Shown: positions 3,090-64,000 of the stretch, piece after piece
Numbering within the stretch: the stretch's first letter is position 1
How the letters are laid out: each line of letters starts with the position of its first letter
Source: Geosiphon pyriformis uo1
Lineage: Eukaryota; Fungi; Glomeromycota
NCBI GenBank assembly: GCA_016748015.1
Contig: JAAOMT010000657.1
Span: 124,001-188,000 of the forward strand
Direction of reading: 5' to 3'
Length of the DNA: 64,000 nucleotides
Made by a program: the position numbers and the translations under genes
The notes under the pieces: generated by a model
Told to the model about the DNA's origin: nothing
Database searches by the model: none
Seen by the model: the letters and a program-made list of their open reading frames with translations, nothing else

Positions 3090-3750
3090 GTTATTGTTAA
3101 AGATCCAACAACATCTATACCAATTCTGTTAAATAGTTAACCAACAGAAATTGAATGGATATTTTCTTTGTGATTGGATTTACCTCTTTTTTAACAGATG
3201 TTACAGGTTTTAATGTATTCAGCAATGTCTTTTCTCAAGGTAGGCCAATAATAGTGAGCTAAAGTTTTCTGAATTGTTTTTGTTTTTCCAAAGTGTCCAG
3301 CTAATGGGTCAGTGTGTATGTTGTATATTACAATTTTTCTTTCTTCAAATCTGATAACTCTTTGGGAGCAGTTAGAATCTTTTTTGTTTCTTTTATATAA
3401 CTTGTTTTGGTGGATCAAATAGAAATTTGATTGTTTGCACAAATGTTCCCTTTGCTGTCAAGTGTATTCTGGTGGGTATTGTTCTTTACCCAAAAATTTC
3501 ATTAAGGCAAAATTGTTTTCCAAGTCCATTATCATGTTTGTCAAAAAGGGAGTTACTAATAATTAAGTTGGTTTGGTTTGAGAAACTTGTACTATTACTG
3601 GATAGTAAGTCTAAAGAGAGTGTTGGCATTTTGATGATTTGCTCCTTTGTAGTGTTGAATATTATAGTCAAATTTGTCCAAATGGTGTATCCAGTAAGTT
3701 ATTCATTTGTTTTCTAGCTTTTTTTTATTGCACAGCCAAATCAAGGCTTG
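3090..3750 (-). pseudogene. Gy1 pol fragment (RNase H end to integrase start), minus strand; host of LINE-A; continues at 22047-22448
   Basis: ORF 3191-3442 HTDPLAGHFGKTKT..CNIC; reading VTDH|QALIW is restored across the LINE-A TSD. Confidence 0.9.
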
Positions 3751-4753: not shown

Positions 4754-7195
4754 TTTTTTTTTTTTTTTTTTTTGTTAACATGTAGCCACGCCAGTCATTT
4801 ATTAGTTATTCCACAGTAATGTGGTAGTTTCATAAAGCCAGCTCACCCAATAATACATATTACAAGATGTGGCTAACCACAAGCAGAAAGCCCTAACTAC
4901 ACATTAGTACTACTTTTGCTACCTAATGTATTAAACATATCTAATTCATACATCTTACCCATAATGCATACCAGTTCATGATTACTTTTAACAAGACTGC
5001 TCATCTACTTAGTTGTCTGATCTGGATCGGACTTGATATTAGAGAATTGAACCTCCCATAACTCCATCATCACATCAAATGTATCATCATAGACCAAAAA
5101 ATCTTTAGCATCACCATCATCATCATCATCATCATCATCCATGTCTTCATCATCAGATATGTTATAGTGTACCTTTCCACTCCTCAACTTGAGAGCCCCT
5201 ACTTCCTTTTGCAGCACAGAAGCCACAGCACAAACAGCCTTAATTTGGTTTCCCAATCCAATTACACTTTCCTTCATTGCCTCAGCCATAACTGGTGGAG
5301 TAGACAATAATGTAATAACCAATGCAACCAAAGAACCCACAGGCTCAACTATAGATTTGATCAACAAAGACAGTTCACTAAGTTGGGTTTCCAGAGAAGC
5401 CAATCTAGCATTAACAGCAACATCTAAACCAGAGGAGGCAACTGGCAACAGCGGCTCCACAACTCTGGGGGATGTACTGAAAGCCAGACCCATATCAGTA
5501 ACAGCAGCAACAGGAGGAACCACAGAGGTGGCAGCTTTGGCGTAGGATTTAGCTCCAACAAGAGATGACTTGAGAAAGATGGGACCACCAGCAGAATTAG
5601 AAGAGATTTTGGGAGGGAGAGGTGACAACACCTTGCAGTCCACAGCCAAATGCTCCAAACTTTGATATCTATAGCAGCAACGACATCCAGGAGTTTCCCA
5701 CCAGATGCAGCAGCCACATAAGGTACCAGTTTTTGAAACAGCAGCATTTAAAGATTCCAAGGAATCAAAGATCACCACAGCAAAGCATTGACGTTGATAG
5801 GAATCAGAGGAGCAGGGAATGAAGCATGTACGGCCACCAACTTGGGAGACCAGATCACTTATCTCAAATGCAGTACAGCCAACTGGAAGATTAACCAGCT
5901 TAGCTTTGAAAGCATCTCTTGAGGAGATAACCTCCTTTTGGTTGACAATGAGAAGAATCCTAACACTATCTTTTCTGACCAACACAAACCAGTTAGAGAG
6001 AGCAGCAGCAGCAGAAGAAATGTCCTTAAAGTTAACCACAGCATATTGCCATAAGCCAGCAGGCTTCAACTTAACAGAAGTGACAACACCAAAAACGCCA
6101 AGAGCAGATTTGATCTTATCAGAAGAAGTACCCAAGGGTACATCACACAGTGCAACTGACACAGAAGGGGAAGAAACAGAGGTCACTCCTGAAGACTGTG
6201 CAATCTTAAGAGTGGTCAAAAAAACTTCATCACCAATGGCCACTTTGGTAGCACCATTTAGACACTTCTGAGATGCAAATTCCACACAGAACAACTTGAC
6301 AGCATCTTGTGAAACAGATTTAAGCCCAATACAACCAGGCAGCAGCTGAAACAAAGAACTGAGCAAAGCCATCTTGATCTTAAACGTAGTACCAGGTACA
6401 AGATTGAAGGCCACCCAACCAGAGAACCTTTGACATCCACTCACATTCACCCAAGTACCAGCATCAGATGCACCAGAAACTGGGGGGACAGTTGATTCCA
6501 TTTCCATTTGATCAGTCTAATCTTTGAGATCATCTGGATTGATGGACTGTTTTGCTACTGGGATTGGCGATGATCTGCCGGAGAGTACCACATCAGACAA
6601 CACAGCCAGTGGTTGATCTTGGCCCATCTTGGGAGATGTGCCGCTGCTGTTGCCATCCATATCAGGAATAGGGCTGGCTGCTGCTGTGGAGATCTTACTG
6701 AAGATCTCATCTGGAACCACAAAGAGGTTCAGTGTGACCATAGCAGTTGTGACTGCCTGCTGCTGTTTTTTGGAATTTTTGGCTTTCATGGCCATTTGTG
6801 AAGCAGTAGTAGTAGAAGTAATAGTGGGAGTAGTGAGAGCAGAAAAGACCAACTTGTTGACTGGCCTGTTATTAAAAATCTTTGGGCTTTTTGAAGTAGT
6901 GGAGACAACACTGGGACTAACCCAAGTGTGTCTTTTTGAAGGAACTTTGACTGGGGAAGAACTACCAGCCAAAGGTGAAAAAAATGAACCAGAAGCCACT
7001 AAAGGCAGCTTATTACTATTATTTTTTAAAGGAAATGTTGCCAGAACGTTTTGTCTAGCTGCTTCAATAACAGAAAGACCCTCTCGTGTTGAAACTTTAT
7101 TAGTTACTATAGGAAAAGTAATGTTTGCAACTTTTTTACTCTTAGCTCTATTCATGGTCATGAAATTTAGGAGAGAAAGAGTTTTTAAAATTCCT
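4754..7195 (-). mobile_element. ORF1-only non-autonomous non-LTR retroelement H1 (HAL1-like) with a LINE-A-type 3' tail
   Basis: Short 5' leader, single ORF1-like frame, no ORF2, ~120-bp 3' UTR matching LINE-A, T20 at 4754-4773; inserted in LINE-A ORF2; 5' boundary approximate. Confidence 0.85.
4897..7161 (-). pseudogene. H1 ORF (~754 codons): ORF1p-like protein with RRM-like domains, degenerate CCHC knuckle, coiled coil, acidic tract and C-terminal extension
   Basis: ORFs 6517-7398 and 5005-6507 are in one frame from ATG 7161 to TAG 4897, with two premature TAG stops (likely TGG>TAG); motifs FGVVTSVKL..WQYAVVNF, AKLVNLP, CYRYQSLEHLAVDC; homologous to LINE-A and LINE-B ORF1. Confidence 0.85.
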
Positions 7196-10100
7196 TTTAG
7201 ATCCAATTCAACTCCTTCACAAATGGAAATGTATGCAGTCTCCTTAGCATTGTTGGCCCATCTTATTGTATCAAGAGTAGTAGATTCTTTGGCTAGTTTG
7301 TTAGCTTTCTCATTTTCTAATATACCAGCATGTGCTGCCACTTTGTTTATGTTGAGATCAATTCTCTTTTCCCTATTATTGCTCTGATTACATTCCATGT
7401 GTGCCAGTTTGAAGTTTTGAGCTGATTTCTAATAGACAGGAGAGAATTTTTGGACAACCATCTTTGAGCCATTGCCATCACCGCTTGATTATCTGTGTTT
7501 ATTGTTAGTTTGCATTTGTAAGGCACTGCTTCCAAAGCTAGCAATACAGCCTTTGCCTCTGCTTTTGTTAATGATAATGTTCCATCAATTGCTATACCAA
7601 ATTCGGCCTCTATTCCATGTGTTATGAAAGCAGCTGTTTCTTTTGCTTCTTCAGAACCAGCTCTTACCAGTGAGCCATCTGTTGATATTTCTATTTTTTT
7701 CCTGAGTCTTAACTTCTCTTGTACACACTTCTATTGTGGTAGTAAAGTGTCAGGGATATGGATATAAATAGTATCTCTTTGCATTGTTTCTAAATCATCT
7801 GGTATTTGATTAGTCAGTATGTGCATACCCAATGTCTCACATTGTGCTACATCAATGTTTCTGTACTCATCCATAATGATTGTAGATTCTAAAATCTTGA
7901 ACCATTTGGAAATTCTACCACTATTGCTTTGTCTGTACTTCCTTGTGAAGTCCATTCATGTCATCAATGACTCATTTTTGTTCTGTATCTAATGCAAGTA
8001 CAATATGTTTTTCTTTCTTAGTAAGCTTTTAACTTTAATGTAAGTTTTACTTAAAGGTAAGATAGACTCAATTAAATATGTCTGTGGTCTTGAAGATTCA
8101 GGTACCCCATGTGTGTTACCATTGCTCTTGAATAAGATGCCTCTTTTTTCCATCATCTGTATAATGTTTGCTATAAGATTAACCCCTGGCTTAGATCGTT
8201 CATTAGTGAGATATTCAAGTATACTATGAGCTGACCATCTTTGTGCCTACAAGTTGGCTAGTCTAATTTTTGTAGCCATTCCAACAATATCAGCACTGTT
8301 CAATCTAACTAACAAATCTGTAATCTTGCTTTTCACTTGTATATCATTAATTTTGAACAAGTTATACAAGGATGAGTGATACATGGCACTGGCTGGGAAA
8401 TCTACTGAAAGTTTTGCTTTTTTCTTCACAGTGGCTGAAATCTTTAAAGTACATTTTCTAGCCCAGCTATTAGGAATATGAGTCAACTGAGATCTAAATT
8501 CAATAGCTGGACTGAGTACACTGTTAAAAATGTAAATGGCCTGTTTCTCAGTTATGTGTTTTTTCCTGATGACTGTACACACTGCTTCAATGTCAGATCC
8601 TATCATTTTTAGAACAGTCTCATTTTTCCCATCTGCTCTGATTCATACCCCCAAATATTGGGTACATGTAGATAGATCCAACAATTTCAAGATTTGTTTG
8701 TCTGGACCAAATTTTAGTGGCTCAACCATTAAAGATCTCCCTTTGGAGAGTCTGACCACCATTGTCTCAGTCTTATCTAAGTTGATTTCAATATCCACTA
8801 TTCTAAAAAAGGAGCTGGTTGTGTCCAAAATACTTTGCATTCCTTGTCTTGAGTTAGCTATCCACACTGTGTCATTAATGAAGGCAAGATGATTCACTGA
8901 CACCAACAGAGATTGTGTATCTGATTGATTATCCCACTTTTTCCATGCCGCTGTCAGTTTGTATCCCTGACTATAATTGGCTTGTTTTACTTTGCACAGT
9001 AAGGGGTCATAAAAAATTCTCCACATAATAGGTGAGCTTGTTTCTCCCTGATCCAGTCCATCTTGTACTTGATATTTGTCACTTAACCCAAATTCAGTTA
9101 TGATCCTGTTGCTTCTATTGTTGTGCATCAAGCCAAACAGCTCAGTAAACCTATTGTTCATCTTAATTCTTTTTAGTGCAGCTTCCATGGATTTCCATCC
9201 CACTGAATCATATGCCTTTTTCATGTCCTAAAATGTAAACCAAGCCTCCTTATCAAATTCTCTTGCATGTTTAGTTACAGCATTAATCACATGAATAGGC
9301 ACTGCTGTGGAGGTATTCTTTAATACAGAGGTATTGTACCCTTTTAGGACATTGTGGAGTTCACATGCTTTTGATATTCTAGCAGTTAGAATCTTTGTTA
9401 AAATTTTTCTGGTGCTTTCAATGAGTGTGATTGGCCTGGTGATGTCAATATTGCCATCCCATTCTTTTGGCTTTGGAATCAGTATAACTTGTGCTACTCT
9501 CCACTCTTCAGGCATGTTTGCTGCTTTAATGCAAGCGTTGAGCAATGTTTTCAGTTTAGACTTGGTATTAGGCCCAGCCTTCCTCCAAAGTTCAGCTTGA
9601 ATGCCTGATGGGCCAGGAGCTTTGTTATGGGGTGTGTGGCTCAATATGTGTTCAAATTCCTCATTTGTTAATTCATTTATTACACCATCAAAGACATAGT
9701 CTGGAATGCTTTTAATTGGCTCAAATCTGTGTTTCCAACTTTTCTATAGGTCAGGCTCAATGCTTCTTGTTTTGGTCCACTTTTGGACTTTTCTGTTTAC
9801 TAGCTTTTTAATTTCATCAGGATTATCATGAAATTTGTCTTCTTCAATTACATGGTCTAGGACAATTCTTTGTCTTTTTTTGTTCATGATGCTTTTGATC
9901 ATAGCTCCTTTGTTTAGATCAAAGTTTTGTTGTCTCTTAATAATATTGTCCACTATCTGTCTCTGCTGTTGTAGCCTAATCCTAGCTCACAGTGTTGATC
10001 TGTATTCTTTCTTAATATTGAGTAATTCTATGATTAGCTTATTCTTTGGGAGAGTCATCAAATATGCATTAACTGCCTCAGGTTTCAACTGTTTCCATTT

Positions 10101-11917
10101 GGCCAACAACTGCATAATATTATTATCATGCATATTTGCATTGTTTACTCTTATTAGTTTGATTATATCAGTAACAATCTTAACAAGCTTGTAATCTATG
10201 CATTCTTTCTTTGTGTGTGCAAATTGGGCTCCCACTTTCTTTTTTGGTAGGCACTTAGCAGCTTGTAACACAGTCTCCTTGATTGTAAGCCACATCTGGT
10301 TTAAATCATCATTGCTGTTATTTATTGATTTTCTTTGTGCTTCATCTGTTAGTCAATCAGTTTCTCTAGCATAGATTTCCCATTGGACTTCAGATGCCTT
10401 TTTAACATCAATCATAGTTGTGCTATACTTCTTTCTTCCAGATCTAGATTTTTTAATGCCTGCCAAGATTCTATCAGATCAGATGATTGTTATTACTGCT
10501 TTGTGATCTGTGCTAAAAGATTCATTAACATCAATCATCCCAATGTTTGCGACCAGTGAGGCTGTAACTGCATCAGTAAACACATAGTCCAATCTTCTTT
10601 GTACATCATTTAATGCCCATGTCTTTTCTGGATTGTTTGTTGCATATGCCCCATGTGTATCTACTAAATTCATATGTTGTAATATTGCAGCAGTTGAACA
10701 AGCTTTGGCTTTATTTGTAGCATATGTTTCCTCAAGTGACATGGATGACAGATCTTCATTCAAATTGCCTGCAACTATAATAATCTCTTTGTTCTGTACA
10801 ATGTCTCCCAAAAGTTTCTTGATTTTTTTAGCTACTGCTCTCTCAGTAGGCAATTTGGAAGCAGGCATATACAGTCCTACTATGTGTACACTGACTCTTC
10901 CTCTAAATTTTAACCCCAAATACAATAACCTCTCATGAAACTTCTTGATTGTTTCTACATGGTATATCCAACATTTTTTGACCAGTATACCAACACCAGT
11001 TCCCATTTGTTTCTCTGTACTTGATTCCCAAAAGACATGATATTCATCAAAACCAAAAAATACACTCTTTTCTTTTGTTGGAGTCATTTTAGTTTCTGTA
11101 ACAATCACAAAGTCAAATTGTTCTTCAATAATCCAACATAGCACCTCTTCAGCTTTACCAGAATTATTAAGCCCTCTAACATTAACAGTACCAATTTTCC
11201 AAGTGTCATTATTGGAGTAGTTCTGTTCTATGTTGGAATCAAGTGTGCTATACATTATTTGTTTTCATAGATTTAGATTTTCCAGCAGTAGAACTGCTCC
11301 AGCTACTCTGTTTTTTTACTTGCTTCAGTAACTTCAGAATGGGTTCCAAAGTTTTTTTAATTTCTTTGATTTCCAATTCTGGATTGTATGCCTCTTTTTT
11401 TTCTGCTGGGGTAGATTTTAATGTAGTATTTTGGCTTGGTAATCCAATTTCTACCACTTTTTTTTCTTCTGAGGTGTTACTTGGCTGTTGAGTAACTATT
11501 ACTTTTTTACCTTTCTCTATTGTCACTCCAAGTTTGACACCAACTGCATTCAGCAGTTTTGCCATTTCATTAACCTGCTGTTTTAGTTCATCAATTTCAC
11601 TCTTCTATGGTTGGTTAATTCTTTTTTTTGATTGTTCTTCCCTATTGTTTACTTGTGGACCAGGTTTCTGAGTATTGTTTGGATTGGTGTTGTTTTGGTT
11701 ATAGAGCAGTCTGAGCGCAGCCATATCAGCATATGATCTTCCACCAAAGGCCTTGATGTTTTCCTCTGGAACATTCCTCTTAACATACAGTTTTGCCAAC
11801 CTAATATTGTTGGTAACTTTCTTGGTATTGTTATGGTTGAAACTCATAGTTTTTATTAGTTATCACATGTATTAGCCACTGATATCATATAATTAGCCAA
11901 CTTATTTTTAGATAGTA

Positions 11918-48252: not shown

Positions 48253-50309
48253 TTATCACATGTATTAGCCACTGATGTCACATAAGTAACCATTCTATTT
48301 TTAGATAATGATCATTGACCTAATCAATGACTTGTCTGTTGACCTGATCATTGATCTGATCAATGACCTGATTGTTGACCTGATTATTGACCTGATCATT
48401 AACCTAGTCATTGACTTGGTCGTTGACCACTTTCAATAGCTATATAAGCGATGAGTCTATTAGCTGTAGAAAATCATCTCTCAGACAAAAATCAAATAAA
48501 TAAAAATAACAACTTTCATCTTAATTACTCTCTTATCACTAATTTTTTTTTCCTACCTTCAAGTATCCAAACATCTTAGGATAAAAGATTACTTGTTGGT
48601 CTTTTCTTATTTGAATAATTGTAGTATTTGAAAACTATTTGTATAAACGTGACTGAAGAACACAAGTTGATACCTGATATTGAATTCTAAGAGTGCTGAT
48701 GTGAAGGCATAGAATTAATACCAGTGGTAATCAATTGTTGACAGTACAGACTATCTCTCTATCTTCAAATTCTCTTGTTACTTTTTAAAAAGAATAGCAA
48801 CTAAGATATTTTATGAAACTGATCTCGCACATTGAATCCATACTCATTCAATTTGCTTATTGAAGTTGAATCCTCTTTGATTATTTCTATTACCCTACAA
48901 TCCTGTTCTCCTTTGCTATCTATTAGCTTGTTATTCCAACCCATAACAATATATCTGATTTTAAACTTAATACTGTTTTTTTTCAAAAAAATAAAAATAA
49001 CAAAAACATATAATAATTTATATTAATAAATCTTTTTTTAATAGAATAGAATACTTAATAATAGTTTAGTTTATTAATTATTAATACAAGTATTTTGACT
49101 ATACAACAAAAAAAATTAGAACATAAATAATTTACTTATTAAATACTTTATTTAGATAAATCTAATAATATTATAAAAAAGCTAATTATTAAAATATTAA
49201 TATTTTTTTTAAACTTATTACCAAATAATAATACAATTATCAATATCAAAATCAACTTAATTATTAGTATGTTTGTTTTAACCAAACATAATAAAAAATT
49301 TGAACAATTATTTTGTATTAACAAAATTTTTGAATAAAAAACAATATTTATTAAATTATATTTAACAACAAAAAAAACATTTGCAAAAACAATTAAATTT
49401 TTATTTGATTTATTAGAATTAATTATATAAAAAAAATAAGAAATTTTTGATTACTTAAAAAAATTATAAAATTTGTAAAAAAAATTATATATATACTAAT
49501 TTATTAACTAAAAACTTTAAAAAATTTAAAAAACTTTAACTTGCTATTATTATTTTATTTTAAAAAAATATTATTAAGTATATTAAAACTTGTAATATTT
49601 ATTAAAAAAAAACTCTTTCAATAAAAAAAAATATTTATTCAAACTTAGGTATCCAATTATTTAATAAAATTAATATTAATATTGTTAAATTTTTAACAAT
49701 AATTTTTAATAATAACATATACATAAAAGCAAAAGTTATTTTTAATTAAACAGTAATTTTTATTGTCATTTTTATTTATAAAAATATTATATATTATTAT
49801 AACTGTTTTAAAAAAAATTTATTTAATAAAAAAAAAGCTCTTTGTCTTTTTAATTTTATGACCACAACCAGAGTAAAAAGTAAAAAAGCTGTATCTGATA
49901 TTTTTTCTAAGATATCTAATAAAATTTTAACCAGAAAAGCTCTTTTTGTGGTAGAAGCAACTAGGCAGAACGTTTTAGAAGTCTTTTCTTTACTTAGTAA
50001 TTGTAAAAAGCTGTCTTTGTAAGCTACTAAAGCAACTTCTTTATCTTTGGCTGGTTTTTCACTAATTAAAGTTCTCTCAAAAAGACACACTTAGGTTAGT
50101 TCTAGTGTTGCCTCTATTTCTACTATGATGCAAACCATTTATAATTATCAAAAATATAGATCAGTCCGAAATTTTAAATGATGATTTTCATGTGTTTTTA
50201 TTTATATAATTAAATTTTATTGGTTAATATACATGTGTTTTTAATATATTATTTATAATAAAAAATAAAATTTTATTAAATTTTATATAATATAAAACCA
50301 AATACAATA

Positions 50310-52459
50310 TTACAAAGTTTGAATATTATATAATTTGTCTAATTCTTCAAAAATATTATCTGGAATTTTTCTATGAGATTTATACTTTTTTATAGCATAT
50401 TCTACTAATTTTCTACTAAGACTTTTTCTATAAAGATTCATATAACACCAACATTTTCTTGAAAATTGTCTAATAGTTATTAAAAATACTGATTCAAAAC
50501 TTTTAGGCACTGTTTTTTGTAATTTTTTCCATGAATAATCGCATTTGTTACATGCATATCTTTTAGCAACTCCCTAATATCTTTCAATAAAATTTAATTT
50601 GCAATGAAATTTTGGAAAAAAAATGCACTTATGTCCCATACTTTCAATTAATTCTTCAATTGCATTTTTTTGAGCAAGAAAATTGAATTCCAAAGATATT
50701 ACTTGATGTGCACAACAAAAAACTCTTGAAGAATCTTTGATTTTTTCTTTGCATTTTTGGCATTCTAATACTAATCCTTTTGATGGCCATTTTCCTTATT
50801 CTATTAATACTTGTTTAATTCTTTTAGGCAATCCTTGAAGTTTTTTGTCTGAATATGTTTCTGAGAAAATCATCAATTGTAATTGATTATCTAATCCAAA
50901 AGAAGTATCTTGCATCAATAATTGCTTTTCACCTGGACTTAAATTCATTCTGTTTGCAATTAAAGCATCTTTACTAAATACTGCATGATTAGAGCTATTA
51001 TCAAAAGCAAATACAGCTGTACAGTTCGGATATAATTTCTCAAAAATTGGAATTGCTTTATATTTAATTTGTTTAAGAAGATGGTCTACTGTCCAATAAC
51101 CATCTTGATTTATACCAAGTTGCAAATAGCATCATGCCTTTTCCAGTATATTAAAATTGTTTTCTATATCATTTTGTTGTAAATGTAAATGTCCATCAAT
51201 TTCAGTTAGAAATTCACTGATCATGATTGATCTTCTATTTTCTTTTTTTCTTAGTAGCAAATTTCCATGTTCAGCCCATATACCATGCTTGCCATCATTT
51301 AAATAAAAAATGCATTCATCATGGATTACAAAAACTCTTTTTTTCTTTCTATTAAGTAAGTTAGGACATATTCGATCCATAAATTCATCTTCATACTTTA
51401 ACATATATTTTTCATGCTCAAATATTTTTTCTAAAAATTCTTTTCGAGATTGCAAAACATCATTTCTTTCATGTCCATTATAATATAAGCCTTGATGATG
51501 TTGTTGGAATAAATAACCAAGAATTTTGAGCCATCTTATTGTAGTTATAAGACTAATAGTTTTTTCTTTCATTATTCCAATATTAGGAAACAATTCATGC
51601 TTGATGAATTTTTTAAATGTGGCTGAAGTGGCATTGAAGTTTTGGTTTCTAATCCAAATATGACATCTTTCCGCAATGTTTTCATCATCAATTATTCTAA
51701 TCATTTTTTGGTGTTTTCCATGTTTTGATGTTGGAAACTTATTATTAAGCAACCAATACTTTGCAAAATATCGAATTCTTCATGCTTTCCATATACTATC
51801 ATCAATAAAAATCTTCTGGGCAATTTTCAAACTGGCATTAATTTTTCCATGTCCATTATTATCATTTAACAAGGTAAGATATTCAAAAATAGTTCTTTTT
51901 TGATTATATTCAAAGACAGTTAACTAAGCATATTGTTTTTCTAAATGTTCTTTTAACTCTTGCCCTTTTTTTATTTGATTAGCATATGGATCAACCTTAC
52001 TTTCTGAATTGTTTAAAGATTCATTAGATTCAGACCATTGTAAGTCTGTAGTTTGAGCATCACTAATATTAAAAAAAGTGGTAATTTTTTTAGTTCCAGC
52101 TGTTGCTTTGGTGAATAAACCATTTAGTCCATATTTACCATAATAGGTTGACTTTGGTATCTTTTTTGTCATGTAAGAGCCTCACTTCTTTTTTTTAGAT
52201 AATTGTTGTTTTTCTATACTAAACTGAGTTTTTTTAATTTTGTATTTATTCTAATTGTGGCTTCCATATCTTCTGTATTATCTCATCCACTGTTATTATC
52301 GTCACTTCACTCTTTATTACTAACATCCAGTCTGTTAAATTTATTTACTTCAATATTATAATCATTTATTGAAGTGGTATGATGTGTTTTTTTATATGAT
52401 TCTTTTGCATTTCTAACTTGATCTTTAGCTTTTCTTTTTCTTTTAGAATAAAGTGGCAT
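50310..52459 (-). pseudogene. DDE transposase of IS630/Tc1 type (fungal long-spacer form)
   Basis: Motifs YYNGHERNDV, VIHDECIF, DGYW, FAFDNSSNH, GHKCIFFPKFHCKLNFIERY(W); putative ATG 52459 (MPLYSKRKRK); several stops and a frameshift. Confidence 0.88.
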
Positions 52460-52849
52460 TTTTTTATGTGATGTGATATTAATTTAGTGTGTAATTGGAA
52501 TTAAAGAATTTGAACCATGTAATGTTGTACAACAAAATTGTATCACAATAGAAATGGGGTTTTTAACTCAGGTATATATCTATTCTTTAAATCTCTTTGG
52601 TTCCAATTTAAACTTTAATTTCTATTTTGTAGTTCTGGATAAGAAGCAATCAAAAAAAGCTCCTTTGGCATTCATCAAAAAAAATTTTTTATTGGGATTG
52701 GGGAGATCATCTGAGCCGAAAATTCAGGTAACATTAATAAAAATAGTTATCACAAAAACCTCTTTAATTTATGACAAGAAATTTGGGCAAAAAAGTCTAA
52801 TATTGACAATTAAACAACCAACTCAAAAGAAACCCGATTTTCAAATTGA

Positions 52850-54595
52850 AGCCAATTTTTCAGAGCTGATGAAAGATTTATTGCAAATGATTGTTGATCA
52901 AAAGATAGTAGGTAAAGATATTTGAGATAGATTTTAATTTTAGTATTACAGCCTAGTTGTGACCTCTCATTTTCATATTCAGTGATTGACAATATGCCAA
53001 ATTATTTATGGATTTACTGTCTAAAGAAAAATATCCAGAATATTATAATGTGATTAAAAAGCCAAGATCCTTAAACATAATTGAAGTTGGTACTATGCAT
53101 TTCTTTTCCATTGGTCACTTAATACTTGACATATGTTTTCTATATCACATTAGTGGAAAATTTGAAAAGAATATCATCCATTTATGAATTTAATTAGGAC
53201 TTGCAATTGATTTCGAAAATGTCATGTATTTTAATAATGATTCACACATTTTCAAAAATGCCAAATTCTTACAAGTGAGAAGTTTATTAGGTCTTTACAA
53301 AAAAATCTGGGTTTTATCTACTTGAACTAATATGTTTCATACATTTTTTGCATCAAAACAAACTTGTTAAAAAATGTACAACACTAACAAAAAAGAACTA
53401 TTCAAAATTATGGGCTTTAAGACAACTTCAGTTTTCCCAATTAAGGTAAAGCCAAAGATCTTTCAATTCCAATCTGATTCCCCTAAATTAACACCAACTG
53501 ATATAAGTTTTTTGATTACTGTAATAAGCTATTATATATCACATTCTAATAAGTTGTTGAAATATTTAACAATTGAAATTCTTTTTACAGCCTAAGAAAC
53601 CAATTCTAAAACTAGATCATGATTCAGTCGAATACATGATAGGTATTTTAGTTATTATATTTCTCTTTGGTATAATTCATCATTCAAATATTAAATTTAA
53701 CCAGAAATCTTTATTACAGAGGATTTCATATATCTCTTAGATCCAAGCAATTCTTTGAAACACAACATTATAGTTATTGAAAAGTTATTTGTGAATTCAA
53801 AGTAAGTATTCACATTATAATAAAAATAATACTGGTCAAAATTTTCAAAGTTGCTTACTGTTTTTTACCTCTCATAGATTGCAAAAATGATTTGTGGGTT
53901 CTTTTTTTTTCAGATCTGATCAAGTTAATTTTTAATTATGAATACTACTCTTATGCTTTACATTTTTAAGCTTTTAATCATTTTTTTCATCAGATGGAAC
54001 ACAATTTATTCTTAAAATTTTATGAAAAAGAAGTGTTCAAAACATCAGTCATTGAAGAACATATGTTATGTATATGATGCTACAAAAAAAAATAAGCCAT
54101 CTATAATTTACCACAGAGTCTATTTATTAAAAAATTAATTGCATTAATTTTTTTTATAAATTTTGAGCTGCACTCTTGCTTCAAGGTATAGGAGTTGGGG
54201 CAAGTGATCAATCTTTTGCAATGTCTCTTAATACTAAACATTTTGCCCACAGTATTACTCTTGGGCTGACAGCCAATTACATCACAGTCATTCTAATTCT
54301 TGCCTCAAATCTGCTGCTCCCAGCACCAAAGCCAGTTGTTCTTAATGTTTATTGAGAAAGACGCAAGGTCACAAATAGAGCACGAATAACATTCCCAAAT
54401 TCTTTGACAATCACTCATAGTACTTTTATGATTTCTTTGATGCCTAGTGTGAACAATATTGATATCTGGGTTTCTGTCCCAATAATAACAACCGAATATG
54501 GTGGTGGTGTGAATGAAATATTCATGGTTAATGGTGCCATGTCACCAGTAGAAGACATGCAGACTAAAAGATACTATATCTTTATAAAAAAGTGA
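52850..54595 (+). pseudogene. Intron-containing remnant of a bromodomain + BAH chromatin-reader gene (Rsc1/Rsc2/polybromo-like) inside the transposon
   Basis: Exon translations: YAKLFMDLLSKEKYPEYYNVIKKPRSLNIIE (52993-53085), FENVMYFNNDSHIFKNAKFLQ (to 53274), EDFIYLLDPSNSLKHNIIVIEKLFVNS, QK*FVGSFFFRSDQ, MEHNLFLKFYEKEVFKTS; GT-AG introns, e.g. 53802-53877; last exon ..LMPSVNNIDIWV..QTKRYYIFIKK*. Confidence 0.75.
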
Positions 54596-57489
54596 CCATC
54601 TAAAAATTAATATTAATATTAATTGAAAACCTTTCTGAAAATGATAATACTTTGATGATTTATCACGTGGTAATGTGACTTTAATGATTGCTAATTGGCT
54701 AAAATCTGATTGATCAGCATCTGAAAATTAAAGATTAATAATAAAAGTGGCTAATTTTAAACTTTAATAACTTTATAAAATATATTATAATTCAAAAAAT
54801 TAAACTGTAAATGTGAAATAAAAAAACTTAATCTATCATATTTACAGTTTAGTTTTTTAATATTATTAAAATTGGAAGACTAGATACAATTTAAAATTAT
54901 ATAAATTGTTTGATGACTATAAATGATCTGTACCATAAAAGCCCAAAAGTATTTAATAATAGGCCAGTTAACAAGCTGGTATTTTTCTCTATAGCTTCAA
55001 TATCTGGTGTTTCTAGCATTTTCTCTTTAAAAAAAATAGTTAAAAAGACCAAAAGTTTAGAAAAGTAAGAACAATTACTTGCCTTTGCTATTGTTACACC
55101 AAACTTTTTTGTGGTTCCAAATAAGATCTTAAATAAGATCTCTGTTACATTATCTAATATGTTATCTAAGATGAGCCAAGATTAACCACTGGTTGTGTTG
55201 TCAAATGTGATGTCTTTTGGCAGATCATCACCAGTTTTAGAAGCAAAACAATCATTTCCTGTGGTGTTATCTGTGCTTGAGAACTGGGCTGACCAAATAG
55301 AAACTGAATCATCATCTTCTTTGGTTTCTGGTGCTGCCATTGGTGGTGCTTAAGAAACTATTACTAGTTGTCAAAGATTTGCTAAGTAAATAGTCTTTAC
55401 TCTAGTGTCTGGTGCTACTTTCAAGATTAAATTGGCTTATGTTAAGACTGTTTTTTAGTCTATACATGGTTTTTTGGGTGCAAAATCTGTTTCTAAGAAT
55501 AATGTGAAATTTTTTTATATTGAGTTTGTCTCTCAAAGTTCTTTGGATACTGCATTTTTGGTTGAACTTACAAGCTTTGTTTGTTTTGCCACTTTTAAAA
55601 TTGTCAAGTCTTTAGTAGTTTCTGAGTTTGGTTCTTTTTTTGCTGCTATTGCACTATGTAATGTGCTTTTGAGTGTGTCTGCTGCTGATATTAAGTCAGT
55701 TTTTGGGATTTTTGGTGAAGTTTCTCATGTTATGCTGAAGCCTATTGGTGTTTGGCAATATATGATTGTTTATTTTAAAGAATTGAATGCTGCTGCTTCT
55801 GCTCTTACTCACTGGTCAATTTTGGTGGGCAAAGATAGTGTTCATATTCTTCTCATTATTAATCAAAATGAGACAATTTTGTTTCATAATTGGTTCAAGA
55901 CCAAGTTGGTCAATCTTTTTTCTGGCTGTACTGTCTTTGAGATTAGTAATATAATCTCTCAGGTTGGTGGCCAGACTTGTTTTATTCTTTGTTCACCTGA
56001 TTCTGGTTGTCATTTCCAGTTTGCTTTGGTTACATTTGGTTTCCAAGTTAATTTGAACTCTGCAGTTGTCAAAACTGGTATCTTGAAGAAATGCTGCATT
56101 TGATAAGAAACTTCTGGCTATTGGCACTGCTTTAGGTGTCAAAAAGTAGGCCATTTGGCTGTAAACTGCAAAGTTACTTCACTTTCACTTTTCAAGGCTT
56201 TCAAAGTGTTTAAACCATATTTTGTGAGTGGTATTTTTTATGCAAAGGCTTTTGCTTTTCTGGTTTCTTCTAAGTTTTCTCTCTTAACAGCTTCTATTTC
56301 TCTTTCTATGATTATTGGTAATTTCTTGATGTCTTCTCAATTGACTTCTTTGAAGTCTGATTTGGTCAAGCTTTCTGTTTTGGTTAAGTCTATTGTTAAA
56401 CCAATTGGTTCTTTAGCCAAATTGTTCAAACAGTTTATTAATAAAAATTTGGTCTCAAGCAGTAAGCTTGACCTTAAAGTCAATAAAGTTATAGTACATA
56501 TAGGTTTCTTTAGTAAAATTGTTAGTAAGTTGGAGAGAGAAGTGGTTTTTTTAAAAAAAAAAGTGCTGCATGAAGGATATTGATATGTCTAATAATTCAG
56601 AGCACTCAGTTGGTTTGAATAATGAGGTGTTTTTTAACTTGATGTCCCTTTGGAAACATGAATCTATTGATGTTAAAGCTAATGCCTTGAAGACAGCCAA
56701 ATGGCTAGTTAAATTAGTTTCTTGTAGTACTACTTTGTTTTTTGTCATTTAAAAGATATCATCTTTGGATAAGTTTTTTTTTGGTGCATCAATATAATAT
56801 AGTCTGAGTTGGCTCAAGTAATTAGTTATATGTAGAAAGTGCATGAGCCATATCTAATTTAAGACTCTATGTGGTCATATTGTATTAGTTAATGATTGAA
56901 TCTTGTTTGTTAAACTTAAAAAAATTAAAAATTAAAAAACTTTGTAAAAAGTTGTAAGTATATTATAAATTTTTTTTTTATATTGCTTTTAAATAAATAG
57001 CTTAGTAAAATATTTAAATAGAAAACTAAATAAAACTCTAACCAAAACCAGTAAAAAAACAAATTTATAAAACAAAATACTATTTTTAGCTTTGTTTATT
57101 TATAAAACTGTAAATTATAACATAACAAATTATAACTTTTTTTATTTGTTCTATAAAAAAATAATAATTATATTAATAAAAATTAATATTAAAACAATAT
57201 TATTTAAAAAACAACAAAAAAAATACAAAAATATCTTATAAAAAAAACTTGATATAATTTTTAAATTTCTTAATAAAAACACAAATAATTGTTTTTAAAA
57301 AGATAAAACAGTTTTAAAAATAATTTAAGAAAAAAAAACATATTAAACTTTTATTTTTTATTATTATTATTATTTAACGAATGAGATCTAAACACTACCT
57401 AGAACTATACATCAAAGAAATGATCTAAACTAGGCATGAATTATGCATTTTCTACACGTGACCAGCGACTCGAGCCAGTCAGGACAACA

Positions 57490-60400
57490 CTACACAATTA
57501 TATTAACTAAAACTGGGTTACCAATATCTGAAAAAAAAGAACAAGATTTGCGAAAACCAAAACGGACGCCAAAAGCTTCAGTAACACCAAGCAGCTTAAC
57601 CATGTCATCCGAGAATCTTGATGCCAAACCAGAAAGTGAGATGGGAACCGAGCCATCCACCAGGATCAGGTCATTCTTTTCCATGTATGCATGATGCTTA
57701 GCATGGACCAACCAAATGTCATCCCTGAAAGCAACACAAATAGAGTGCACAAAATCAGCAGTTTTAATGCCAGCAATTTTGGGATCACAGAAGATGGAAA
57801 CAGCCTCCTAAAGCCATCCTTTGAAAACAAAATTCTTGCAAAGAGCCGAGAACACCAGAAAATCCAAAGCACAGGTCGACAGCAGCTGTAAAATGCTTGA
57901 AGAAGAGAAAGAGAGACCAGAAAGCACCATCCAAAAAGACATACAGGATTCCAAAACCTGACGACAAGCTGCATCATCAATTATACAAGAAAACACGTGA
58001 TCAGACACCTCCACCTCACCACAATACAGACATAAAACACTAGAGTAACATTTATCATAAATGCGCTTTTGAACAGCCACGGGAAGCCGACGGTGCAAAG
58101 CCTTCATGAGGTAAGTACAAATATCAGCAGTGTGCCTGCTGGTGAAACCAGTTGCCATATGCAAATCAGGGTGCCAAACTCTGGAAAAGGCAAGCCAATT
58201 GACATTCGAGTGCAAATCACCAGCTAGAAACCCAGAACTGGAACCGACCTTCCAGCGTGCCCAACAGACAGCACAAAAAACATCTCAAACAAAATGTCTA
58301 GAATTACCAAAAACAATACCACCGTCTGCCAACAAAAAATGTTCATCCACACGAGAAGGGAAAAGCCAAACAAAGAAAGCTGTAGTATCAGCGAAGCTAT
58401 TGGCACAATCATTTCCCAACACACCAGAGTGGCCTTTAATCTTGTGCCAGCTAACCCTCAAATTTTTCCTATGGATAATATTCCTAATATGCCAGTGCTC
58501 AACCCAACACCAATTACGAAAGTCAAGATACATCAAGTTCACTTCCGACTTGCAAGCATCTAAAGCTGCCTGGCTATCTGAAAACAGGCAAACAGAACAA
58601 TCTACAGGCATGCACTTCAGAGCCAACACTACAGCTTGCAACTCTACCAAAATAAATGACATCAAACCCTGAACACAGACACCCAAACCCAAGTTAATGT
58701 CCTCAAAAAAGGCAGCAGCCCCAGCCCTACAACCAGCCATGCCCAAATTTTTCACTGACCCATCTGTATACACAGACAAACTATCAGTGCTAACCCGAAA
58801 AAGATAATCACATACAGACACAAAATCATCAGAACCACAAATATCCATAGGGCCAACACCACCTGAAGCCAAAGAAAAGGAAGACGCACCATTGAGAAAT
58901 ACAACAGAGCGCTTAAACCACTTAGGAACTGGGCCACAAGGATCCAGTTTCTTCTACCACTTAAAGGTGTACCAATCAAAGATACCCCCACGATAATCCC
59001 GAAGCTGATCTACAAAGGCAATGCCATAATGCTGGAGAGAAGGCAAGTACTTGAAAAACAAGGATTTACTCAGAACAGCAGATATGGACACCCCATCACG
59101 AAACCAAAAAGAGCTAGCCAAAGAGCCACCTAAAGACAAATTGCACCTAAGAAGAATGCGTACCATTCCTGACAAAAAATTATTGGAAACACTAACACGG
59201 ATACAAGCTGATGAACTCAATGGATGAACGGGGTGCCAACACAGAACTTGCAAGTCATAAGACCTGTGACTAAACAATTAACCCAGAACCCTGCAAGAGT
59301 TTGCAAAACTAATAAGTAAAGCAACCTTGCTTTCAGACTGACATTGTGAGAAGGACTTCAAACCATAAAAAGAAGAATGATGAATCATGTCACTAGGAAA
59401 ATTGAGAGGAAGACCAGATTTAAGTTTCAAACTCTTACAAATCAGAGCATTCCACTTGTTGCACACACTAACAAGGATAAAGCTGAACTGCGTTCTGTAG
59501 CTGACTATAGGATGGAGAACTGCCAACACCAGATACAAGAACTGCTTATCTGAAACCATTTTTTTTAGAACCAAATTGCTGAAAAAATGAACATCCGAAT
59601 GTGCCTTAGCCAAACTAGGCTTAGAAAGACCATCAGATGAGAGAAAGATACCAAGATACTGATGAGATTTGCCTTTTTTGGCTATAAAAATGGGTGAACC
59701 ACTGATAAAAAGAGATGAATTGCTGATCCTGCTATTAATAGGAATGACCACAGTTTTGTCATTGTTGATTGAAATGTCATTAATTTGTAAAAATTCACTA
59801 GCAACATTGAGAATATGTTGAGTAGCAGTCTGACTGCTGCCAACTTAAAGTGTGTTATCAACAAAGGCCCCAGCAGCGAAAAAAGTAGAAAACCCAGCTC
59901 AAGATTCAGCACAACCATTCCTAGAGACAAAATGAGAATTGAGTCTATACCCGCACACACTCTTCTGATACTTGATCTCACACAAAAGAGGATCATAAAA
60001 TATGTGCCAAAGAAGAAGGGAAAAAACTTCTCCTTGGTTCAACCCATTATGTACACTATAACCATTAGTTAAACTGAAATTCATCATAACCCGATTGGTC
60101 CGATTTCTATGAATATTACCGAAAAAATGAATAAACTTGCTACACATTTTGATCCTGACCAAACACTTCTCGAGATGCTCTCATTTAACAGAGTCATACG
60201 TTTTTCACATATCTTGCAGTACCAGCCAGAGCTTCCAGTTCTTCTCCAAAGCATTCTCAACAACTAAACCAATAGCAAAAATAGGAGTTTGGGTAGTCGT
60301 ACTCTTCAAAACTGAAAAATTATCTCCATGAAGAATGTTATGAGCACTGCACGCCAGTAATATCCTGTTAGAGAGAATCTTGGAGAGAATCTTGTGAGCC

Positions 60401-62165
60401 GTCTCGATCAAGGCTATAGGTCTGGTATTTGTGAGAACACCTTCCCATTCATATGGTTTAGAGATCATCAAAATTCAAGCTTCCCTCCAAAAACCAGACA
60501 CAGACTCATGAGACAGACAAAAATTCAGAAGCACCAAGAGCATATCCAGAACAGACCTATTACTATGCATCCACAGCTCATTTGAAATACCCAAAAGACC
60601 AGCAGCTTTGCCAACAGGCAAATCAGAAACCACGCCAAACAATTCCAAAAACTCAATTGGCTGCATTATACCAGAAAAAGCCTCATCAAAAATGTAATCC
60701 AATGGCCAATACTGATGGTGCCACACATCAGGGACATTGGGAACCACCCTATGCTTCCTAGTCCATCCTTCTATGATTTCATCCACCCTTGATCTCACAA
60801 GACTAAGTTCTATAACCAGCTTATTGTCCACAACTAAGTGATCTAAGACGACCTTATGGGAAGAGCACTTCAGAATGCTCCGAATAGTGTGACTTTTGTT
60901 CAGCTTAAAACTTTCCATCCTCTTATAGATTGCTTGATTTGAGATTCCTCTACATGCTTCAATTCTGCCATTTTAAGTAAGCAATAAGTTTTTCTGATTT
61001 TAGAAAGAGCTGACCAAACAGTATTAAGAGGTGAGCTGGAAAGAAAAAGAGACCTGACCACAGAAGTGTTATCATTATCAAGAAAACCCCAGACCTCCAA
61101 CAGTGAAATGAATTCATCATGACAAATTGACCAAAAAGCTTTAACCAGCTTTGATATCAAAAGTTCTAACTTATGAAATTTGGATGATTCCTTAGTGAAG
61201 ACACTATCATAGTCCTTAAACTATTTTTTCTTGAACACCTTATTAGCTAAAAGAACCATTATCTTGCAAACAATGTTCCACATTGCATCCAAATCTGAAA
61301 ATTGCTGGGAGGCAATAAAATCATCAAAGAACATGATGGCATTAGCTGTTATAGCACCCTTAAACTTGTTCCATTTCACATCATCAGCATCCTTAAAATT
61401 AAACTTCCAATGATTTCTATTCACCTGTTTGTGAAAAGAGTTCAATTGCATGTCCAATAAACCACCTAAACCCAAAGACACAGAAACAGCCTGATGGTCC
61501 GTTTCGAAATGTTCACCAACATTTAAGACACTGCGGTGTACTATCACATTAACTAAATTTGAAGAAACTAACATGTAGTCAATTGTTTTTTTAATACTCC
61601 TAGAGTTTGCCCAAGTAGGCAATTTCACAGCCAGGCTTTCTACCAAAGAATTTGCCAAACCCAAATCAAAGCACTTCCTAAAACTTGCACATTTATGAAA
61701 ACCATCTTCATTGAAATCGCCACCAAGAACAATAAAAAAAGATTCATTGACAGTTTTTGCAATGAGAGAGTTGATCTCACCAGCCTAAGAGAACCAAACC
61801 ACTGGAGAAGCACCAGCATAAAGCCCCAGAATTGACACAGAAAGTTTATTTTTGAAAAGTAATTTAACAGACAAAAGCCAACCAGGCACTTCAGAAACTT
61901 TGCATACATGATGAGCCAAAGAAATGTTCATGATAACAGCAATATCCACACCCAAGTGACCAAAGTCTGAACCAGAAGTAAACACTCAGACATCATTAAA
62001 CTTATCTGCAATTCACGGACAAATCTTACTCCTTAATTTTGTTTCAGTAACAATAGAGACCAAATTGTTCATTTCCTTATGCCACCTAATAACGTCCTCC
62101 TACTTAGCAGGATTGTTCATGTCTCTAACATTGCACGTAGCAACTTTCCAGACCAAACTGCTTAT
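57490..62165 (-). pseudogene. LINE-B ORF2: APE - RT - RNase H - zinc finger
   Basis: KVATCNVR, TETKL, KTIDYMLV, ETDH; GKAAGLLGI, TRPIAL, LQDM, GLNQGEVFS, YLGIF; VYTDGS, ELQAVVLAL, FSDSQA, KIKGHSGVLGNDCAN; CLYCGEVEVSDHVFSC. Confidence 0.93.
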
Positions 62166-63997
62166 TGAGTGAGGGGTAGAGACACTGAGTGGACACCTAT
62201 ACTATCCACTTTGGCCAAAAGGCCCAGAACCATTTCCATTAGACATCTCATGCTGTCTTCCAGCTTAGACACTGAAGACATATTGAAAGACACCACTCCT
62301 ATAACAGTCCCACCACTAGTAGACACACCTGAGCTCTCACTCATTACTACATCCGCCCCTTGATCCTGTGATAAAGGGGTCACCAATGGCTGACATCCAG
62401 GACTAGGCTGGAGAACCATTGGCCCAAGTGCATCTAACCTCTTAGCCAGCTTACCAACTTGCTCTGCAAGGCAGACAAGACTGCACTCAAGAGCGGCGAA
62501 CCTATTGTTGACCTCCATCGTAACCAGCAGGGATGGCTTTATCTCCAAAGAGAAGCCATTGTCTACCAAAACCTTCTAACTAGAGAGGGGGAGCAAAGAA
62601 GACCCGTGAGCAATCTTTGCCCAAGAGAAACCACCAAAAGAGACTGGACGAGCAATTAAAGCCGAGTGTTTGGCATAAATGGCTGCCAGCCTGCTTTTAT
62701 CCATGTCCGAGAAAGCCCTACGCAGCGAATTACCAGAAGAAAACTTCCCACCAACCACACAACTCAATAACGTATGACCCAACTTCTCATACTTGGCGCA
62801 TTTAGCAGAGATGAGACGAGACCAGTGGAAATTGGTGTTTCTAAGTACTGGTGTGGTTCTCACGCCAGCATCCAATGATTCAGCAGAGTCGAAGCAAACA
62901 ACAGCACACCTGGCCCAAGCATACGTAACAGAATGACAATCAATGACATATGTTTTCCCACCCACAGATTTAACAAAATCCCAGATATCATGAGCATTAG
63001 TCCCCATTGGCAATGTGTAGAGTAGCGCCCTATGTCAATTCCTTGCATCCCATGCCTCTTTGTCTGAATCAGCCCTGGCCACACGTACAGTATCTTTTCC
63101 AATTAGAATAGACTACTCAGCTGCGACCAAATCAGTCTGATCTGGTTGCTCAAATTCTACCACTGCCTTCTGCCATAGCCCAATTAACTGCATCTTGATC
63201 GCCTTAATAACTCCAAACTTGGATAGTGCAGTGTGCACAGCCTCAGCCGATATTTCAATTGGAATTTTTTTTATGACCACAGCTTGATCTGATCGCTCAG
63301 ATGATTTTTTGAGATCGGTGTTTACTAGGATCTTTGTACTTGTAGCCTTATCAGTAGCTTTCATTAGACTCGATTCAGAAGTAAACATTATTCTGATGAT
63401 CCCTGAGAATTTTGAGGGGGTAGACACCCCCCCAAAACCATTGATTCCAAAAAATAATTTCCTTACTACCACAAGCTTTTCCTGAGAAGAATTGCTGGCC
63501 ACCTTATCTAAGCCAATATCTAATGCAAATGACTTCCTGACTAAAACATTGACCAAGTTTTTCAAAGGAGAGGGGAGCTCAAGAGGAGCATCCGAGAGAA
63601 TACTATTATCATCACTCTTCTTTGAAAAATCAATCTTTCTTAACGGCTTGCCCAATGCCTTCTTGGTTTTGACTTTTAAACTTGTGGGTGTTTGATCATG
63701 ATTCCCACCAGCCAGAGCACTACCTTTACCAAAATCAAAGCTGGTCTCTTCTACCAGACACTCCTTTTCCATATCAATACTCTTAGACTCAGTAGTGTTC
63801 CCAGTTTCTGAACTCCATGAATGGCTCTCTTGGACTTTAGAAGCCACTTTTTTGCCACTGGAACCATCTTCCAAAACACCACTCCTCCTCTTCTTTCTTG
63901 ACAAGACTGTCTCAAAACCATCACCAGAACTAGAACTCTTAACAGCTTTCTTCATGATAGCAGTATATGGGCCAACGGTGGCCTTGTAATCGAACAT
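62162..63997 (-). pseudogene. LINE-B ORF1 (RRM-like domains, CCHC knuckle, coiled coil)
   Basis: FGVIKAIKMQLIGLWQKAVVEF, RALLYTLPMG..VGGKT..CAVVCFDS, CAKYEKLGHTLLSC; ORFs 63113-63997, 62576-63013 and 62162-62569 separated by premature stops. Confidence 0.88.
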
Positions 63998-64000
63998 AAA

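Follow-up and report, generated by a model that had tools for sequence, protein, structure and literature searches.

Must the 3′ end of a non-autonomous retrotransposon come from the same parent as its coding sequence? The question is raised by a 64,000-nucleotide stretch of the genome of the fungus Geosiphon pyriformis (Glomeromycotina; assembly GCA_016748015.1, 128 Mb; contig JAAOMT010000657.1, positions 124,001 to 188,000 of the forward strand), referred to here as the window, which is a nest of Gypsy, long interspersed nuclear element (LINE) and DNA-transposon copies. Two of its elements, H1 and H2, encode only the first open reading frame (ORF) of a LINE, ORF1. Their proteins are homologous, and their tails match the 3′ untranslated regions (UTRs) of two different autonomous LINEs, LINE-A and a LINE of the LINE-B type. 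We consider it likely that H1 and H2 form one superfamily of non-autonomous non-LTR (lacking long terminal repeats) retrotransposons with a swappable LINE 3′ UTR, in which the tail, and probably the helper LINE with it, has changed at least once. This reading builds on the observed anatomy of the elements, the chimeric structure found throughout the families, the ORF1 phylogeny, covariation in the tails and the co-location of H1 with LINE-A. The features concerned are as follows, in window coordinates.

49837-56931, forward strand: H2, inserted in a Gypsy element and itself holding a nested Tc1/mariner insertion
49837-50125, forward strand: H2 5′ segment, a 5′ UTR of about 20 nt (CTCTTTGTCT..TTAATTTT) and the start of ORF1 (MTTTR..); the 5′ end is homologous to those of H1 and other H copies, and full-length copies elsewhere have the same start base
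about 50126-54935, no strand assigned: nested Tc1/mariner-type insertion, outside the H2 family structure; the H2 segments flanking it are contiguous in about 13 full-length copies
54936-56794, forward strand: remainder of H2 ORF1, decayed here, with RRM (RNA recognition motif) region, zinc-knuckle region, coiled-coil-like part and conserved C-terminus ..KISSLDKFFFGAS (blastx)
56795-56914, forward strand: H2 tail, the stop codon plus 117 nt, homologous to an entire LINE-B-type 3′ UTR (alignment)
56915-56931, forward strand: A-rich 3′ terminus of H2; the Gypsy flank restarts at 56932 (flank comparison)
57373-57492, reverse strand: LINE-B 3′ UTR, from the TAG stop (57492-57490), followed by a (TAA)n/A-rich end at 57356-57372
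57493-64000, reverse strand: LINE-B body, running past the window end, with an RRM-type ORF1 (63997-62162, broken) and ORF2 (Pfam RNase_H, ORFs, at least 40 colinear copies)
4754-7186, reverse strand: H1, a full-length 2.43-kb ORF1-only element nested in LINE-A (5′ and 3′ ends of the family; tblastn of protein P0006 onto 7161-4900)
parts of H1, reverse strand: ORF1 7161-4900 (premature stop in the window copy), TAG stop 4899-4897, tail 4899-4775, poly(A) 4774-4754
7187-11828, reverse strand: LINE-A 5′ part, with short ORF1, endonuclease, reverse transcriptase (RT) and start of RNase H (Pfam Exo_endo_phos, RVT_1; 5′ end at 11828 in more than 25 copies)
3748-4753, reverse strand: LINE-A 3′ part beyond H1, with zinc-finger ORF, ORF2 stop TAG 3894-3892, 3′ UTR 3894-3760 and poly(A) (at least 40 copies with the same end base)
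2884-3089, forward strand: 5′-truncated H1-like copy, the last ~66 nt of ORF1 plus a LINE-A-type tail, 87% identical to H1 4764-4967 and with an H1-type C-terminus

H2 is a discrete insertion: in two other Gypsy copies of the window, the sequences that flank it (49724-49836 and 56932-57000) run on without a break. H1 splits LINE-A, with the RNase H part above 7187 and the zinc-finger part, ORF2 stop and tail at 4753-3748. The ORF2 of LINE-B comprises endonuclease, RT, RNase H and zinc finger. The decayed ORF1 of the window H2 matches the intact 690-residue proteins P0112 and P0108 at 55-63% in blastx.

The same structure characterizes whole families. The final 832 bases of H2, used as a genome query, returned 761 candidates, and in all 40 scored places, the best of these, the ORF1 end and tail are covered to the last bases of the query. 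The first-pass annotation had allowed that the H2 tail might be peculiar to the window copy; all 39 other scored copies carry it to the same 3′ end. Sixty genomic loci were read as sequence (30 H2 and 30 LINE-B), and genome copies of H1, LINE-A and a numerous third family, H3, were located by search. About 13 of the 30 H2 loci hold full-length copies of 2.29 kb with the same start base as the window copy, about 15 hold 5′-truncated copies with scattered breakpoints, and the 3′ end base is identical in all copies read. Nine full-length copies were inspected for target-site duplications; three have clear ones of 9-12 bp, a low count explained by the A+T-richness of the flanks. Such a fixed 3′ end, combined with variable 5′ truncation and duplicated target sites, is the signature of target-primed reverse transcription.

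H1 is a younger relative of H2 (2.43 kb versus 2.29 kb). Its search gave 388 candidates, with more than 30 scored copies 88-93% identical through the ORF1 end and tail and sharply ended at the 3′ side (>30 copies). More than 35 copies start within a few bases of window position 7186, regardless of the upstream sequence, and the junction of the window H1 with LINE-A recurs at only one other place among the scored H1 copies. LINE-A has a sharp 5′ end (11828), a sharp 3′ end (3748) and a length of 5.65 kb; in LINE-B, ORF1 and the 3′ end are each colinear in at least 40 copies. H3 terminates at its TAG stop in at least 90 places, with open frames of up to 729 residues. In no scored H1 or H2 copy is the ORF1 stop separated from the 3′ end by an endonuclease or RT. 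Intact ORFs of 690-729 residues are kept in several H1, H2 and H3 copies despite ~55% protein divergence between the clades.

By homology to LINE ORF1, absence of ORF2 and retrotransposition as a unit, the H elements are ORF1-only non-autonomous LINEs. Neither H1 nor H2 derives by internal deletion from the LINE that supplies its 3′ end. At 2.3-2.4 kb, with a ~700-residue ORF starting about 20 nt from the 5′ end, they are not short interspersed nuclear elements (SINEs), which are short and non-coding and have an RNA polymerase III head. In tail homology and conserved RNA structure they agree with LINE-tail-sharing retroposons of the 'stringent type'.

The body of the two elements is shared from the first bases onward. 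H1 and H2 DNA align at 71% over 7186-6902 versus 49833-50114, including the homologous ~20-nt 5′ UTRs, and at 65% over 6630-5630 versus 55168-56174. Intact annotated H ORF1s reach 690-725 residues and fall into three C-terminus types that align to the last residues: ..KMYELDMFNTLGSKGSTSM* in H1, ..KMSSLGKFSSGAST* in H2 and ..RICGLGLFSPTFDSA* in H3. End-to-end identity between H1-type and H2-type proteins is 42-46%, which bears out the initial observation that the H2 protein aligns with that of H1 from N- to C-terminus. Pfam RRM_1 is detected in H1 ORF1 (E 1.3e-8), and the H ORF1 has homologues in the ORF1s of LINE-B-type LINEs and in that of L061, an autonomous LINE from a metagenome.

Whether H1 and H2 are one lineage was put to an ORF1 phylogeny, a check set beforehand. 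Both a full-length tree (LG+G4) and a core-domain tree (careful search) place H1, H2 and H3 in one clade with 100/100 support, split into H1 versus H2+H3. The Geosiphon LINE-B-type ORF1s, including that of the window, form a separate clade (100/100) and are at most 28% identical to H ORF1 overall and up to 37% in the RRM core. LINE-A cannot be the parent of H1, because its 5′ end is fixed at 11828 and its ORF1, of at most 190 residues, gives no significant match to H1 ORF1. The LINE-A remnant instead resembles the post-zinc-knuckle part of LINE-B ORF1 (E 8e-5), and the ORF2 proteins of LINE-A and LINE-B are ~37% identical.

Two observations concern the wider ORF1 family. The LINE-A ORF1 (11248-11828, reverse strand) keeps only the post-zinc-knuckle motif of LINE-B ORF1 (RLAKLY..FGGRSYADMA) and a coiled-coil-like stretch; given an RRM-like stretch upstream in the 52%-related LINE of gene model P0152, LINE-A looks like an ORF1-truncated lineage. 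The nearest relative of H ORF1 from outside Geosiphon is the 668-residue ORF1 of L061 (metagenome contig ERZ27267609:k141_105778). An overlapping endonuclease ORF comes after it and the end of an RNase H-bearing ORF2 before it, an arrangement indicative of tandem autonomous LINEs.

The tails divide this single lineage. In the window, the H2 tail (56795-56914) and the reverse complement of LINE-B positions 57373-57492 form a gap-free alignment, with 74 of 120 positions identical (62%). Transitions make up 32 of the 46 differences, and 23 of these have G/C in LINE-B and A/T in H2. The local-alignment score of this pair alone is weak (z 5.8); better-kept copies (L021 versus L033) reach z 27.6, and the H1/LINE-A pair reaches 37.5. 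Thirty H2 and 30 LINE-B tails share 120 columns with just three indel columns. The majority states of the two families agree at 83 of the 120 (69%), individual copies are 56-73% identical between families, and identity within families is 83% (H2) and 88% (LINE-B). The first aligned triplet in family copies is the TAG stop of both H2 ORF1 (..GAST*) and LINE-B ORF2 (..NIIV*); in the window H2 it is TAA. The first-pass annotation was right that the match starts at the stop codon, but the window ORF1 is broken and its real stop is 56795-56797, not the in-frame stop at 56750.

The H1 tail matches the end of LINE-A ORF2 and the whole LINE-A 3′ UTR (3897-3760) at 78-79%, starting from (A/G)TG-TAG, and both end in poly(A). 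Four H1 tails from the genome search are 72-79% identical to the LINE-A tail, from 2-10 nt before its stop to its end. The cross pairs, H1 versus H2 and LINE-A versus LINE-B, are at chance level (z 0-2). The tails group as had been predicted, and the H2 tail is indeed unrelated to that of H1. The pairing also holds across ~294 kb of sequence: a LINE-A-type tail follows both H1-type C-termini (2/2), and a LINE-B-type tail follows all 31 H2-type C-termini and that of the single H3 copy. Of four more divergent H-like C-termini, two are followed by a LINE-B-type tail and two by a short partial tail match or none.

The shared tail is also conserved as a predicted RNA structure. For 26 tails of LINE-B type, taken from both LINEs and H elements, RNAalifold predicts five helices with 33 pairs, with helix 1 joining bases at or just after the stop codon to the 3′ end. 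Inclusion of the stop codon in helix 1 would explain why the shared module starts exactly there. Paired cells amount to 95% in this structure, against 30-40% when partners are slid, and 18 pairs have changed on both sides, against 2-8 in the slid controls. Eighteen of the 34 majority differences between H2 and LINE-B fall in paired columns. All 11 affected pairs still pair. Seven of them changed on both sides, and among these, two AU-to-GC changes and one UA-to-AU change go beyond what the GC-to-AT decay of this genome can explain. Judged from these sequence comparisons, the H2/LINE-B tail appears to be under structural selection and looks functional. The LINE-A-type tail is predicted, from three sequences, to fold with an analogous closing stem.

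Taken together, an H element consists of a ~20-nt 5′ UTR, presumably with an internal promoter, one ORF of ~690-725 residues, a structured 3′ UTR of ~120-135 nt and an A-rich end. The ORF encodes an RNA-binding protein of the LINE ORF1 type, in which an RRM and a zinc-knuckle region are accompanied by a coiled-coil-like part. The body (5′ end and ORF1) is homologous across the superfamily, and the 3′ UTR would be the swappable module, that of LINE-A in the H1 clade and of LINE-B type in H2, the single H3 copy and more distant H-like copies. Considering the anatomy, the tail structure and the co-location with LINE-A described below, we infer that H elements are mobilised in trans. Their own ORF1 protein would coat the transcript, and RT and endonuclease would be borrowed from whichever LINE the tail mimics, the tail being the structure that the helper ORF2 protein presumably recognises to begin target-primed reverse transcription. 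LINE-like insertion of this kind would explain why the 3′ end is constant, why copies are truncated at the 5′ side and why target sites are duplicated.

By parsimony, the LINE-B-type tail is likely ancestral and the LINE-A tail acquired, so that at least one replacement, most plausibly from LINE-B type to LINE-A type, would have occurred on the H1 branch. The route may have been read-through into a LINE 3′ end or RT template switching onto one, with selection keeping only chimeras of an intact ORF1 and a complete tail structure. The first-pass annotation had proposed that an ORF1-only lineage switched tail and thereby helper. Replacement of the tail on a single ORF1 clade is supported; its direction and the dependence on a helper are inferences. 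Of the two helper/satellite pairs envisaged there, the first agrees with the H1/LINE-A tails; the second is better described as H2 with the LINE-B superfamily, since the LINE-B of the window may not be the actual helper of H2 and related LINE families with related tails exist.

Several points weigh against this account. The H2 tail is 31% diverged from LINE-B at the majority level, and no sampled LINE tail is closer than ~70%, so the real helper of H2 may be another LINE and may be extinct. The H3 tail is known from one copy. Four of the seven compensatory changes are GC-to-AU, the direction favoured by the strong GC-to-AT bias of the genome, and single-sequence folding energies are modestly better than those of shuffles (z -0.3 to -2.9). 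Among ~60 scored LINE-A copies there is no open frame above 949 residues and no intact ORF2, so that the presumed helper of H1 may be inactive now. A LINE-B-type copy with a 1521-residue open frame does exist. Finally, the co-location of H1 and LINE-A could result from a shared chromatin niche or segmental duplication and not from shared machinery.

That co-location was counted among the 40 best copies per family at a distance of 50 kb. A listed LINE-A copy is found at that distance or closer for 24 of the 40 H1 copies, and another H1 for 31. None of the 40 has a LINE-B or H2 copy as near, and those two families are dispersed. A common preference for certain targets, or a special niche on the chromosomes, might lie behind this clustering. 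H1 and LINE-A form discrete clusters, mostly one per contig and in mixed orientations (contigs C615, C733, C699, C439, C647, C594, C490, C540, C404, C631, C651, C660, C710 and others).

A further reading, which we regard as rather unlikely, takes H1 and LINE-A as a two-part retrotransposon. LINE-A would contribute endonuclease and RT, and H1 the RNA-binding ORF1, having taken the LINE-A 3′ UTR in order to be copied; the few dozen clusters that they share might be a specialised niche such as centromeres, and the H superfamily would perhaps have swapped tails repeatedly to track whichever LINE was active. The relation would then be one of mutual dependence and not of parasitism, LINE-A relying on the H1 ORF1 protein and H1 on LINE-A ORF2, by analogy with HeT-A/TART. 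The short LINE-A ORF1 (at most 190 residues, without RRM and zinc-knuckle parts), the shared clusters and the many intact H1 ORF1s are all compatible with such dependence. These points are purely circumstantial; short ORF1s also occur in autonomous LINEs, H1 and LINE-A ORF1 proteins show no similarity that would suggest co-assembly, and the scored LINE-A copies hold no intact ORF2. Mutual dependence is therefore improbable.

It is similarly unlikely that the two H families arose by independent internal deletions. Two now unseen autonomous LINEs, each with an H-type 5′ end and ORF1, one with LINE-A-type and one with LINE-B-type ORF2 and tail, would each have lost ORF2, which places the recombination between LINEs, as an exchange of ORF1 modules, and not on an ORF1-only lineage. 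Precedent speaks for it, because ORF1-only elements usually arise by ORF2 loss, as in HAL1, HeT-A and Ag-Sponge (PMC5786205), and repeated ORF2 loss is described for Drosophila telomeric elements (10.1101/2025.06.09.658640). In addition, the 52%-related LINE-A-like element of P0152 seems to have its RRM-like stretch upstream of the ORF1 remnant, as if LINE-A ancestors had a longer ORF1. Set against this, no LINE with an H-type ORF1 was found among the long H-like gene models examined (P0129, P0165, P0152 and P0121), the first three of which are merged neighbours, and the LINE-A remnant resembles the ORF1 of LINE-B and not that of H1. The junction, moreover, lies exactly at the stop codon in both pairs, which random deletion would not give twice.

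Homology alone gives no direction, so the tails might in principle have arisen in H elements or a third party and been captured by LINE-A, LINE-B or both. This is very unlikely. LINE-B-type tails occur on several LINE families with ORF2 C-termini only 30-55% identical (L008, L058, L019, L016, L013), a pattern of vertical descent within LINEs, and in both LINEs the tail begins at the LINE's own stop and closes a predicted stem with its 3′ end. That the H2 tail is an adjacent 5′-truncated LINE-B insertion or A+T-rich noise, a suspicion prompted by the mere 62% identity of the window pair in A+T-rich DNA, has a negligible chance of being true given its presence in all scored H2 copies, the z of 27.6 in well-kept copies, the three indel columns in 120 and the covariation.

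The reading of one ORF1-only superfamily with exchangeable tails combines properties described separately in other systems. Non-autonomous LINEs that retain ORF1 (HeT-A, HAL1, Ag-Sponge) and occasional tail exchange among SINEs, including CORE-SINEs, Ceph-SINEs and others, have been described (Kojima 2018, PMC5786205). Like H, HAL1 of mammals and Ag-Sponge of Anopheles are multi-copy elements that keep a LINE ORF1 and a LINE 3′ end without ORF2 and presumably use a helper ORF2 protein (Bao and Jurka 2010 and Biedler and Tu 2003, as cited in Kojima 2018, PMC5786205). They are described as deletion derivatives of the LINE that supplies the tail, whereas in H the histories of ORF1 and tail differ: the H1 body is unrelated to LINE-A, and H2 ORF1 is at most 28% identical to that of LINE-B. 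H elements also differ in their fungal host and in a structured, LINE-specific 3′ UTR in place of a plain poly(A).

Drosophila telomeric ORF1-only elements arise repeatedly and can found new ORF1-only lineages (10.1101/2025.06.09.658640). HeT-A/TART and the ORF1-only telomeric Jockey elements depend on the ORF2 of another family, as H presumably does, and resemble H in being long-lived and in sitting beside their helper in particular places. The passages searched in that preprint do not mention exact replacement of a 3′ UTR at the stop codon. Unlike HeT-A/TART, H copies lie in mixed orientations, with neither head-to-tail terminal arrays nor a known host function.

SINEs share with H a conserved body with tails from different LINEs, each tail being a LINE 3′ UTR whose structure the RT is thought to recognise; such 'stringent' recognition goes back to Ohshima 1996 and Kajikawa and Okada 2002, as cited in PMC5786205. 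The H body is a protein-coding 2.2-kb ORF1 unit, presumably transcribed by RNA polymerase II, whereas that of a SINE is a small-RNA head transcribed by RNA polymerase III, and the H junction is bound to the stop codon, unlike SINE tails. In fungi, the EKA genes (AVRk1/AVRa10) of Blumeria graminis derive from LINE ORF1 and have numerous coding copies (Amselem 2015, PMC4641428). By the abstract of that paper, they are truncated or degenerate LINE copies co-opted as effectors, as opposed to a defined ORF1-plus-tail unit, and the abstract mentions no tail exchange. Neither ORF1 nor non-autonomous LINEs are mentioned in a transposable-element survey of arbuscular mycorrhizal fungi, G. pyriformis among them (PMC11952901). 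A limited literature search found no description of an ORF1-encoding non-autonomous LINE with an exchanged LINE-specific 3′ UTR. ORF1-only elements and SINE tail exchange are each known; their combination is new.

This combination extends tail exchange from SINEs to ORF1-encoding non-autonomous LINEs and means that ORF1-only elements need not be plain deletion derivatives of their helper. It also amounts to a natural swap experiment on LINE RT recognition, in which one kind of coding cargo is joined, exactly at the stop codon, to either of two unrelated structured 3′ UTRs whose matching autonomous LINEs differ but share the genome, and the defined H/LINE pairs suit trans-mobilisation assays.

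Several smaller observations accompany these elements. The Tc1/mariner insertion at 50126-54935 is absent from every other full-length H2 copy examined and is a later, private event. In a tree of the tails, that of H3 falls beside LINE-B proper and those of H2 beside further LINE-B-like families (L024:3313-3426, reverse; L058:3471-3591, reverse; L013:1266-1386, forward; L003:2764-2875, reverse), which, with 120 columns, long branches and skewed composition, is no more than a hint. If the grouping is real, the sequences hint at tail exchange within the LINE-B superfamily as well, and the H3 and H2 tails at repeated swapping.

At five of the 30 LINE-B loci (L040, L047, L045, L048, L053), the start of an H2/H3-type element follows the LINE-B 3′ end on the same strand after 190-690 bp, ~10-fold above a rough chance estimate. 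The spacers are unrelated and very high in A+T, and L040 and L047 are duplicates, 92% identical throughout. Together with the P0129 locus, where 320 bp separate an H3 stop from a 5′-truncated LINE, these tandems present an arrangement from which read-through could attach a new tail.

P0129 itself, P0165 and P0152 were considered as autonomous LINEs with an H-type ORF1 and rejected, each being an H copy merged with a neighbouring LINE. P0165 also holds a complete LINE-B-type ORF1 of its own, and the RRM-like stretch of P0152 is just 26% identical to H. P0121 was likewise rejected as a parent LINE, as it consists of repeated H1-like ORF1 segments without ORF2. More broadly, ~300 annotated G. pyriformis 'hypothetical proteins' (NCBI G9A89_*) are H-element ORF1s; 120 of 299 protein matches were listed, and every one of these is a G9A89_* entry. 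Some of these gene models join an H copy to an adjacent LINE through predicted introns. The H superfamily thus accounts for these proteins and for several chimeric gene models in the annotation.

The decay of the copies follows a common pattern. In the 3′ regions of H2 and LINE-B (L001-L060), G-to-A and C-to-T changes make up 70-75% of substitutions. The CpA bias typical of repeat-induced point mutation (RIP) was rejected as the cause, since C-to-T change is about as frequent before A as before C or T, with a threefold higher rate at CpG. The CpG sites of LINE-B are ~3 times as mutable as its other C sites, which points to deamination of methylated C and not to classical RIP. Decay of this deamination type explains the A+T-rich, stop-ridden state of the window H2.

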